Shown: positions 19,590-22,500, counted from the stretch's first letter. The stretch is 64,000 nucleotides of DNA from Macrostomum lignano (GCA_002269645.1 NIVC01000084.1:806001-870000); one strand, 5' to 3'. Program-made: numbers and translations. Notes: generated from the sequence alone by a model not told the origin.

Positions 19590-22500
19590 TCACTCAGTTT
19601 TAGTCCTAGACTTGGCCGAAGCACCTCCTCGGGCTCCGCCTCCGTCGCTGTCAGCGTCATCATCAGCTGGATATTCAACAGCATCCGGCTGACGATAGAA
19701 CTGCGCCAGAATGCTCTCGGGAGTCTGACTGTACCTCAGCAGCATTGAAGGCGACCTGAACAGGAACAGCAACTTGGCGAACAATTCTTCTTCTAGTTGC
19801 AGATCGCCAGTCTCTCGGACCAAATAGATGTCATTAATAATAGCCAGGATTCTGTCCACGTGAGGCATTTCAATATAGGCTACCAGATAGTGAACTGGCA
19901 CAATGCCCGATCGCAATATCCTAGCTATGGAGATGAGGAACACAGACAGAATGCCGTACATGCCGACCTTCTGAATAGCTTGAATCAGGCGGTTCTCCGA
20001 CCGCGACCGCTGCGACAGCAGCACCAGCCGGAGAGAGTCGTGAGCCTCGCCTTCTGTAGGCGGATTAGAATAATTGCCTGGGCACAGGTGGCTGCCGCTG
20101 TACAGGTCGCTCAGCTGCCACCAGGAGATGTCCGAAGATTGGCCGGAAGAGTTCAACTTGGCCTCCAGACTAATCGGCGTTCGCAAGTCGATGAGCTCCT
20201 TTGGCAGGCCCGTCAGGCCAGTCATGACGGTGGAATCGCCGCGTAACAGAAGGAACCTGGTGCCGATGCTGCGGAATATCACCCACGGATTCGCTGTGGA
20301 GTTTTGCAGCACCTGTGCGAGTTGGGGTGAATGGGGCCCGGTTAGGGAATGGTTGCAGTGGGCACTGTGGGTGAATTAAGGTGGCATTTTTGTTATTCTG
20401 TTAGTAAATTTTGGTGAACTTAATGGATGAAAATGGGTGGACGTGTGGGTGGATGTGGGTGAATTTGAGTGAATTTGGGCGGATGTGGGTGAATTTGAGT
20501 GAATGTGGGTGAATTTGAGTGAATTTAGGCGGATGTGGGTGAATTTGAGTGAATGTGGGTGAATTTGAGTGAATTTGGGCGGATTTGGGTGAATTTGAGT
20601 GAATGTGGGTGAATTTGAGTGAATTTGGGCGGATGTGGGTGAATTTGAGTGAATGTGGGTGAATTTGAGTGAATTTGGGCGGATGTGGGTGAATTTGAGT
20701 GAATGTATGTGAATTTGAGCGAACTTGAGAGTGAATGTGTGTGATTTTGAGTGAATGTCGGTGGATGTCGGTGGATTTGAGTGAATGTGGGTGAATGTGA
20801 GTGAATGTGGGTAAATTTGAGTGAATGTGGGTGGCTGTGAGTAAAGGTGGTGGCTGTGGATGTTCTTTGATTGATGAAGATAGATAGATAATAAAATGTG
20901 GGTGACAGTGTTATCAGTGGTGAATGCGGGTAAATGGCGATGCATTAGTGAATGAAGTATCAATAGGTGGCCAAAAAACAAGTGTCACAAGGGTTTCCTC
21001 ACGCGCAGCAGCTCAATCCTCATATCGCTGCCCTGCAGCAGGTCCTGCCTGAACACCACCGTACGAGCCACTCCGCTGTCCTTCTCTCGAAGGCATTCGA
21101 GTCGGAATGCCAGCTGAACCGAGCCATTGCCGGCCAGCTCATTGGTGAGTGCCGCTCTGGCCGGGGGAGTGATGGTCCACAGCACGCTTGACATGCCATT
21201 GAACTGCACAGTGTAGGCCGTTGTTGAGCTGAGCAGAGACCCGATTCGCTTCGCCGATGACTGCGGGGGATTCGGGTAAAGGGCTCGGATTGTTCCTTCA
21301 GCTGTACACTCTCTCCCTCATCCGCCCTCTCCGTCTCTCCCTCCCTCATCCGCCCTCTCCGTCTCTCTCTCCCTCATCCGCCCTCTCCGTCTCTCCCTCA
21401 TCTGCCCTCTCCGTCTCTCCCTCATCTGCCCTCTCCGTCTCTCCCTCATCTGCCCTCTCCGTCTCTCCCTCATCTGCCCTCTCCGTCTCTCCCTCAGCTG
21501 TACACTCTCTCCCTCATTCGCCCTCTCCGTCTCTCCCTCATCCGCCCTCTCCGTCTCTCCCTCATCTGCCCTCTCCGTCTCTCCCTCATCTGCACTCTCC
21601 GTCTCTCCCTCAGCTGTACACTCTCTCCCTCATCCGCCCTCTCCGTCTCTCCCTCATCTGCCCTCTCCGTCTCTCCCTCATCTGCCCTCTCCGTCTCTCC
21701 CTCATCTGCCCTCTCCGTCTCTCCCTCATCTGCCCTCTCCGTCTCTCCCTCAGCTGTACACTCTCTCCCTCATCCGCCCTCTCCGTCTCTCCCTCATCTG
21801 CCCTCTCCGTCTCTCCCTCATCTGCCCTCTCCGTCTCTCCCTCATCTGCCCTCTCCGTCTCTCCCTCATCTGCCCTCTCCGTCTCTCCCTCAGCTGTACA
21901 CTCTCTCCCTCATCCGCCCTCTCCGTCTCTCCCTCATCTGCCCTCTCCGTCTCTCCCTCATCTGCCCTCTCCGTCTCTCCCTCATCTGCCCTCTCCGTCT
22001 CTCCCTCATCTGCCCTCTCCGTCTCTCCCTCATCTGCCCTCTCCGTCTCTCCCTCATCTGCCCTCTCCGTCTCTCCCTCATCTGCCCTCTCCGTCTCTCC
22101 CTCATCTGCCCTCTCCGTCTCTCCCTCAGCTGTACACTCTCTCCCTCATCCGCCCTCTCCGTCTTCCCTCATCTGCCCTCTCCGTCTCTCCCTCAGCTGT
22201 ACACTCTCTCCCTCATCCGCCCTCTCCGTCTTCCCTCATCTGCCCTCTCCGTCTCTCCCTCAGCTGTACACTCTCTCCCTCGTCTGCTCTCTCCGTCTCT
22301 CCCTCAGCTGTACACTCTCTCCCTCATCTGCCCTCTCCGTCTCTCTTCATCCACTTTCCTTCTCACCCCTTCATCCGCCCTCTTCCACTCTCTCTTCACC
22401 CGCTCTCTCCCTTCATCCTCCCCGCTCCCTCTCTCCCTTCATCCTCCCCGCTCCCTCTCTCCCTTCATCCTCCCCGCTCCCTCTCTCCCTTCATCCTCCC

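Follow-up and report, generated by a model that had tools for sequence, protein, structure and literature searches.

A Serine at the Gate Position of the Piezo Pore in Macrostomum lignano, with a Reciprocal Change One Helical Turn Above

Introduction

Among the closest known relatives of the gene analyzed here are mouse and human PIEZO1 (PDB 5Z10, 6B3R, 7WLT, and 8YEZ), in which V2476 of the inner helix is viewed as the transmembrane hydrophobic gate and the main determinant of inactivation and is described as remarkably conserved. Recent work on the mouse protein assigns the transmembrane gate to the hydrophobic residue V2476 and describes S2472 as the "sole polar residue" within the hydrophobic segment of the pore (10.1101/2023.09.28.559900); the equivalent gate residue in Caenorhabditis elegans PEZO-1 is V2366 (PMC12951647). 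The present analysis concerns a Piezo gene of the flatworm Macrostomum lignano within a stretch of 64,000 nucleotides (GCA_002269645.1, NIVC01000084.1:806001-870000; hereafter the window, with positions counted from its first letter). The region 19730-19990 on the minus strand corresponds to the end of an intact gene for a Piezo mechanosensitive channel and encodes the lining of the pore. A sequence-only reading of this region had noted a serine at the gate and a loss of acidic residues in the C-terminal domain (CTD), and had proposed a slowly inactivating Piezo paralog with altered ion selectivity.

The engineered mouse Piezo1 mutants V2476S and L2475S/V2476S (Zheng et al. 2019, eLife, PMC6349400) share the pore-facing serine with the window channel but carry it in an otherwise wild-type background, whereas the window channel also differs at 2475 (Ile), at 2472 (Val), and at the MF site (M2493/F2494). 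According to that paper, V2476S slows inactivation (tau 46.8 ms), L2475I accelerates it (tau 2.8 ms), and substitutions at the MF site (MF-to-AA) slow it 1.6-2.7 fold. It further reports altered kinetics for all polar substitutions examined at the LV site (L2475/V2476) of mouse Piezo1 and Piezo2, and an unchanged ion selectivity for LV-site mutants (PMC6349400). Three acidic residues of the CTD, E2487, E2495, and E2496, bind cations and line the lateral fenestrations (PMC6776524), and two of them, E2495 and E2496, influence conductance, block, and selectivity for Ca2+ (PMC6776524; PMC7796548).

Results

Register and Residues of the Inner Helix

The inner helix and proximal CTD of the window gene, from GMYG to MPHVDRIL, span 40 residues (19845-19964, on the minus strand like all parts of the gene) and correspond to mouse G2465-L2504. 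The mouse Piezo1 string used in the original comparison matches PDB chain 9ved_A (residues 2464-2559; YGIVGLYVSIVLVVGKFVRGFFSEISHSIMFEELPCVDRIL) and is exactly that of the chain at 2464-2504. The ungapped register to mouse Piezo1 (HMMER, E 3.5e-15) was reproduced independently when 34 pore modules were aligned with MAFFT. A register shift is excluded: HMMER, phmmer, and MAFFT agree, and G2465xxG2468 upstream and [GAS][RK]xxR2482 downstream lie at identical spacing. Because the register is fixed by these two flanking motifs, the serine codon TCC at 19929-19931 (S2520 of the window model, S2513 of the deposited protein PAA84339.1) is placed at V2476, the hydrophobic transmembrane and inactivation gate.

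All seven substitutions proposed earlier (Y2470L, L2475I, V2476S, F2480I, E2487P, M2493A, and E2495I) hold in the alignment, and together with S2472V and F2494Y they set the window protein apart from PIEZO1, to which it aligns ungapped from G2465 to beyond L2504 with ~33% identity over the pore module. The tyrosine at F2494 and the retention of E2496 had been overlooked. The altered codons are GTG (Val, 19941-19943) at the position of mouse S2472, where Thr or Ser is usual, ATC (Ile, 19932-19934) at L2475, CCA (Pro, 19896-19898) at E2487, and GCC TAT ATT GAA (Ala-Tyr-Ile-Glu, 19869-19880) at M2493-F2494-E2495-E2496. A canonical gate has a hydrophobic residue at V2476 and Ser, Thr, Ala, or Gly at S2472; the window gene has Ser at the former and Val at the latter. 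Arg at the K2479 position, R2482, E2496, P2498, and VDRIL are conserved, whereas the linker between cap and inner helix is two residues longer than that of PIEZO1. The alignment is unreliable in the part of the cap that holds the mouse "DEEED" patch (2393-2397), a patch that even the vertebrate Piezo1 proteins in the set do not conserve.

Gate Residues across the Piezo Family

HMMER, run exhaustively against 1.84 billion representatives, identified 538 relatives, and residue frequencies were determined for 147 distinct Piezo inner-helix/CTD segments numbered on mouse Piezo1. Position 2476 is occupied by Val (85), Leu (34), Phe (7), Ala (6), Ser (3), Ile (3), Gly (1), Met (1), and Trp (1) among 141 residues, so that 130 out of 141 are Val, Leu, Phe, Ile, or Met. 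All three serines belong to M. lignano and none was found in the 144 non-macrostomid segments; judged from these sequences, serine at the gate is truly rare and macrostomid-specific. The neighboring Ile at 2475 is unremarkable (17/138; Leu 82, Phe 28), and position 2480, Ile in the window, is Phe in 63, Leu in 32, Met in 15, Ile in 13, and Val in 13 segments. Trematode and monogenean (neodermatan) Piezos carry Phe-Leu, Phe-Val, or Leu-Phe at 2475/2476; those of Paragonimus westermani (KAA3682259.1), Protopolystoma, and Cichlidogyrus share an "ELPHVDR" signature with the window protein, but their gate is hydrophobic, unlike that of M. lignano. The gate of PDB 9W7X, a 2551-aa Piezo that is presumably the Drosophila protein, is a hydrophobic Leu-Leu pair, unlike the Ile-Ser of the window.

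The serine at 2476 is accompanied by a reciprocal change at 2472. Among 96 gap-free distinct inner helices, position 2472 is Thr in 52, Ser in 28, Ala in 8, Gly in 3, and Val in 5, and is thus polar or small in 91 out of 96. In each of the five cases with Val at 2472, position 2476 is Ser, Ala, or Gly, and a hydrophobic residue at 2472 is absent from all 87 helices in which 2476 is hydrophobic. The covariation between the two positions gives a Fisher p of 2e-6, or 2.6e-4 with M. lignano counted once, neither value being corrected for phylogeny. Apart from M. lignano, Val at 2472 occurs cleanly only in two metagenomic proteins (P0047 and P0074), which have Ala or Gly at 2476 and therefore display the same direction of covariation.

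The pore-lining stripe formed by positions 2469, 2472, 2473, 2476, and 2480 reads I-V-F-S-I in the window versus L-S-I-V-F in mouse. Since S2472 is replaced by Val and the Ser appears at 2476, the stripe contains one polar residue in both proteins, displaced by one turn. The polar and hydrophobic positions would accordingly be swapped at i/i+4, and the hydrophobic girdle is probably displaced one helical turn outward rather than abolished. The pattern suggests that the girdle was relocated, not lost, and Val at 2472 may compensate for Ser at 2476.

In two relatives, the inner-helix/CTD module occurs twice in succession within a single predicted protein, one from the rotifer Didymodactylos carnosus (P0015, residues 26-107 and 111-190) and one PIEZ2-like protein from Mya arenaria (P0018, residues 1219-1297 and 1315-1391). 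These double modules represent either a tandem exon duplication or alternative last exons that were merged by gene prediction.

Piezo Lineages in Macrostomum lignano

At least three Piezo lineages are present in M. lignano: lineage A (the window gene and Mlig022252), lineage B (Mlig015119), and lineage C (Mlig015205, Mlig019372, and Mlig016368), represented for B by BOX15_Mlig015119g5 (P0174) and for C by BOX15_Mlig015205g1/019372g1 (P0164/P0165). They share 67-70% identity in the pore module; for A and B, the full-length identity is 48%. In a neighbor-joining tree of the 34 pore modules the M. lignano lineages are monophyletic in 100 out of 100 bootstraps and sister to Paragonimus in 83 out of 100. 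The residues V2472, I2475, S2476, and P2487 are common to all three lineages, and the serine is encoded by TCC in A, TCT in B, and TCC in C amid many synonymous differences. Over 80 codons, the ratio of nonsynonymous to synonymous substitution rates (dN/dS) among the lineages is 0.07-0.15 with dS of 1.0-1.5, indicating strong purifying selection, and conservation among the three places the inner helix near the 95th percentile (0.75-0.80 vs. 0.34 overall). As all three lineages carry Ile-Ser and are under purifying selection, the comparison indicates that the serine was fixed before the triplication of the M. lignano Piezo genes and was then kept by selection. The proposal of a single specialized paralog that deviates at the gate is contradicted by the tree, in which all three lineages found among the matches listed form one clade and all are Ile-Ser.

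Other positions differ between the lineages. The MF site is Ala-Tyr in the window, Pro-Tyr in B, and Met-Tyr in C, and positions 2495/2496 are Ile-Glu in the window versus Val-Asp elsewhere in M. lignano. Lineage B contains an additional, minisatellite-filled intron of ~0.75 kb just before the inner helix, between ...NRLIQ and AIQKVGMYG... (positions 1970-2715 of locus L001), which is absent from the window gene (compare window position 19990), reflecting an intron gain or loss between the paralogs.

Acidic Residues of the Lateral Portal

Position 2487 is Gly in 70, Glu in 21, Asp in 15, Asn in 14, Ser in 11, and Pro in 6 of the 147 segments (acidic in 36/147), and Pro in the window. Position 2495 is Glu in 55, Asp in 35, Thr in 18, Arg in 9, and Asn in 6, with Val, Gln, and others also found (acidic in 90/147), and Ile in the window. 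Position 2496 is Glu in 86 and Asp in 45, and the window retains Glu. The acidic portal of the Piezo1 type has three acidic residues per subunit; the window protein has Pro, Ile, and Glu at these positions and keeps only E2496. The acidic triad is not general to the Piezo family, and a reduced acidic state of the portal is common among invertebrate Piezos.

The reported loss of CTD acidic residues is thus borne out in that positions 2487 and 2495 are non-acidic, but it was overstated: E2496 is kept, 2495 is highly variable, and Glu at 2487 accounts for just 21 of the 147 segments, against 70 for Gly. Because Glu is a minority state at 2487, the window protein has not lost a residue typical of the family. 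Taken over the segments compared, the "loss" mixes ancestral and derived states and is mostly ordinary invertebrate variation. With one negative charge per subunit instead of the three in Piezo1, the lateral portal could have a lower conductance, Ca2+ preference, and ruthenium-red sensitivity. Drosophila Piezo, according to the discussion section of one paper, keeps Glu-Asp at 2495/2496 yet is insensitive to ruthenium red (PMC8042031), and the residues at these two positions are therefore poor predictors of pharmacology across phyla. The case for altered selectivity is weak, because LV-site mutants leave selectivity unchanged and the acidic loss was overstated.

Structure and Identity of the Piezo Gene

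The complete Piezo gene occupies 19590-47736 on the minus strand and consists of 23 exons with a coding sequence of 7899 nt (2632 aa), from the ATG at 47736 to the TGA at 19592-19590. The gene model was obtained by tblastn of PAA84339.1 (P0162) onto the window followed by refinement of the splice sites, partly by hand; every intron is GT-AG and the spliced model has zero internal stops. The exons 1-6 lie at 47736-47669, 47583-47504, 47419-47300, 46574-46329, 45817-45484, and 44940-44772, and the exons 7-12 at 44033-43980 (54 nt), 41493-40561, 39270-39122, 38250-37955, 37482-37313, and 35773-35600. They are followed by exons 13-18 at 34366-33637, 32609-32456, 31419-30747, 30129-29680, 29084-28211, and 26924-26725, and by exons 19-23 at 24897-24616, 24254-24091, 23211-22614, 21260-21003, and 20312-19590.

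The window model and PAA84339.1 (BOX15_Mlig022252g1, 2625 aa) are identical at 2604 out of 2625 residues (99%) and differ by 21 substitutions and a 7-Gln expansion. The expansion lies in the poly-Gln tract of exon 8 (41300-41360), which has 18 residues versus 11 in PAA84339.1 and is the sole length difference between the copies. The best relative, P0012, is ~99.6% identical over the last exon (one substitution, E2602D) and clusters with PAA84339.1. By sequence, the window gene is an allele or near-identical copy of BOX15_Mlig022252g1.

Five Piezo Pfam domains were identified on P0162, all above the cut-offs (E 7.7e-138, 1.6e-30, 5.2e-29, 1.8e-75, and 2.8e-43), and P0162 has the full-length Piezo architecture of TM1-24, TM25-28, THU, THU9-anchor, and cap in this order within the length range expected (about 2100-2800 aa). 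Mouse and human PIEZO1 share this five-domain architecture together with the E2133 motif, outer helix, cap, inner helix, and CTD. Exon 21 (22614-23211, donor tcg|gtgaga) encodes the end of THU9, the anchor, the outer helix, and the start of the cap; it matches Pfam Piezo_THU9_anchor (5e-51) and aligns ungapped to mouse Piezo1 2074-2253 (HMMER, E 5e-46). Exon 22 (21003-21260), with an AG acceptor and a GT donor, encodes the middle of the cap domain, ends in ...MRIELLR, and is present in P0012 and P0162. The last exon, exon 23 (19590-20312, 723 nt, acceptor cacag|GTG), encodes the C-terminal half of the cap, the inner helix, the CTD, and the stop codon; it matches Pfam Piezo_cap (5e-32) and the PDB chains of Piezo2, Piezo1, 9w7x, and C. 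elegans PEZO-1 (HMMER, E 3e-16 to 6e-13). The best HMMER match of any window exon to the PDB has an E of 2.5e-47. The identification of the region as a Piezo pore is confirmed by these two Pfam matches and is no chance resemblance.

The anchor motif PF(X2)E(X6)W of the Piezo family is encoded at 22998-23033 and aligns ungapped to mouse 2129-2140. Its conserved glutamate (GAA, 23021-23019; E2171 of the window model) is the equivalent of mouse E2133, query residue 63 pairing with mouse 2133, and had rightly been described as retained in the PFEW motif. An AlphaFold2 (AF2) model of the pore module (predicted local distance difference test, pLDDT, 65.5) contains the anchor helices, outer helix, beta-rich cap, long inner helix, and CTD helices of the Piezo pore-module fold. 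In a Foldseek search with this model all 22 significant matches are Piezo1, Piezo2, PEZO-1, or cap-domain structures (E 1e-28 to 2e-10; next match E = 0.1), and the pore modules of the invertebrate structures C. elegans PEZO-1 (PDB 9ZIS and 9UOY) and 9W7X superpose on it. By homology, the window Piezo is expected to assemble as a trimer into a cation channel gated by mechanical force.

Tandem Repeats and Neighboring Reading Frames

Within the Piezo gene (19590-47736), 20 out of 22 introns consist to 46-98% of tandem repeats, each with a different minisatellite, with periods of 4-46 bp and about 14-380 copies; the only repeat-free introns are the two of 84-85 bp. Tandem repeats cover 77% of the Piezo intron bases, 1% of the exon bases, and 40% of the whole window. 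The lineage B locus L002 is 67% tandem repeat and its introns are likewise filled with minisatellites, again of different units. Closely similar 28-bp units (variants with CTGGGAGGCTGGCCCAGCAACTGA) are found in intron 20 (23239-23989) and again, downstream of the gene, in an array of 1.9 kb (15893-17791), and these 28-bp arrays create long spurious open reading frames (ORFs).

A neighboring gene is indicated by a 384-aa ORF at 5127-6281 on the minus strand, which contains a glycosyltransferase DXD sugar-binding region (Pfam Gly_transf_sug, 8.9e-7). A 326-aa ORF at 9263-10243 (plus strand) and ORFs of 222, 182, and 119 aa at 56607-58780 (minus strand) are non-repetitive and have no significant Pfam match; they are probably exons of neighboring genes. 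Apart from the Piezo gene, the ORFs of the window are mostly without a Pfam match.

Discussion

The window gene is already deposited and automatically annotated as Piezo, and what it carries is a natural substitution at a well-studied site of a known family. The explanation that best accounts for the data, and that is considered well founded, is that of a constrained Piezo subunit with a lineage-wide Ile-Ser gate, Val at 2472, Pro at 2487, and a hydrophobic 2495 next to an acidic 2496, in which the hydrophobic girdle is probably displaced. Gating kinetics may be modified in such a channel, moderately slower inactivation being the single most likely direction. The mouse wild-type channel reportedly has a tau of about 11 ms, which would make the slowing by V2476S and the acceleration by L2475I about four-fold each. 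Slow inactivation is therefore plausible for the window channel, although sequence predicts neither the magnitude of the effect nor even its direction.

Several points weigh against this explanation. Piezo inactivation is multi-locus, with contributions of the cap, wedge, blade, and lipids (PMC12951647), and an extrapolation from a single site in mouse to M. lignano may fail. Perhaps two or three independent lineages underlie the covariation between 2472 and 2476, which is uncorrected for phylogeny. The monomeric AF2 model, moderate in confidence and with pLDDT <50 around module residues 422-431, supports the fold, not the pore geometry. A canonical Leu-Val Piezo was not found in M. lignano among the best 150 of the 538 matches. 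A literature search found no electrophysiology, expression, or localization data for any M. lignano Piezo; a search on flatworm or Macrostomum Piezo and its pore residues returned nothing relevant, the matches concerning piezo-driven injectors.

The combined effect proposed at the outset, in which the gate serine and the missing acidic residues lead to slow inactivation and altered selectivity, conductance, and ruthenium-red block, is a possible but tentative account. Its premise that a polar gate substitution slows inactivation agrees with the tau of 46.8 ms for mouse V2476S in the mutant study, where MF-to-AA also slows mouse Piezo1 (PMC6349400), and the window channel has both Ser at 2476 and Ala at 2493. 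The portal has one acidic residue per subunit instead of three, and the purifying selection acting on the serine implies that it is functionally tolerated or required. However, the same study has L2475I speeding inactivation and the LV mutants keeping their selectivity (PMC6349400), Val at 2472 may compensate, and the window Piezo is not a single deviant paralog. The acidic "loss" has the wrong polarity given the minority status of Glu at 2487 and the variability of 2495, and the discussion of one paper describes fly Piezo as a Glu-Asp channel that ruthenium red does not block (PMC8042031). The opposite view, that the changes are neutral or fully compensated, with a channel that gates and permeates like other invertebrate Piezos and a serine that is a quirk fixed in the macrostomid ancestor, is rather doubtful. 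It is favored by a stripe that keeps exactly one polar residue (Ser moving from 2472 to 2476) while 2469, 2473, and 2480 are hydrophobic, and by the fact that L2475I, F2480I, K2479R, F2494Y, and non-acidic residues at 2487 and 2495 are common in the family. Yet all polar LV-site substitutions examined in mouse Piezo1 and Piezo2 changed the kinetics (PMC6349400), and the occurrence of Ser at 2476 in 0 out of 144 non-macrostomid segments suggests that it is not freely tolerated.

A misalignment, an error in sequencing or assembly, or a copy decayed to a pseudogene could be suspected in a polyploid, repeat-rich genome in which several near-identical gene copies exist and some public models of the Piezo gene are fragmented or garbled (P0014), but an artifact or decay of this kind is extremely improbable. 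The ungapped register comes from two alignment methods and is bounded by conserved motifs, the window, contigs of GCA_002269645.1, and an older UniParc model all show the serine, which three diverged lineages encode with two different Ser codons, and the 7899-nt ORF is uninterrupted, its splice sites are canonical, and dN/dS is about 0.1. A pseudogene or assembly error is effectively refuted by the intact ORF, the purifying selection, and the presence of Ser in three lineages. A more far-reaching scenario is speculative and judged unlikely as a whole: before the triplication, macrostomids would have fixed a relocation of the gate by one turn (S2472V and V2476S) and a partial neutralization of the portal (Pro2487, Ile/Val2495), giving rise to a Piezo family with distinct inactivation and permeation.

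The value of the finding is that of a lead for comparative physiology, with no new biology shown yet. Stable transgenesis works in M. lignano, and in vivo tests are therefore feasible. If the relocation is true, these channels would offer a ready-made test of the hydrophobic-gating model. A natural serine at the gate, kept by purifying selection in three diverged paralogs and with a reciprocal change one turn above, offers a natural test that sets gate position against hydrophobicity.

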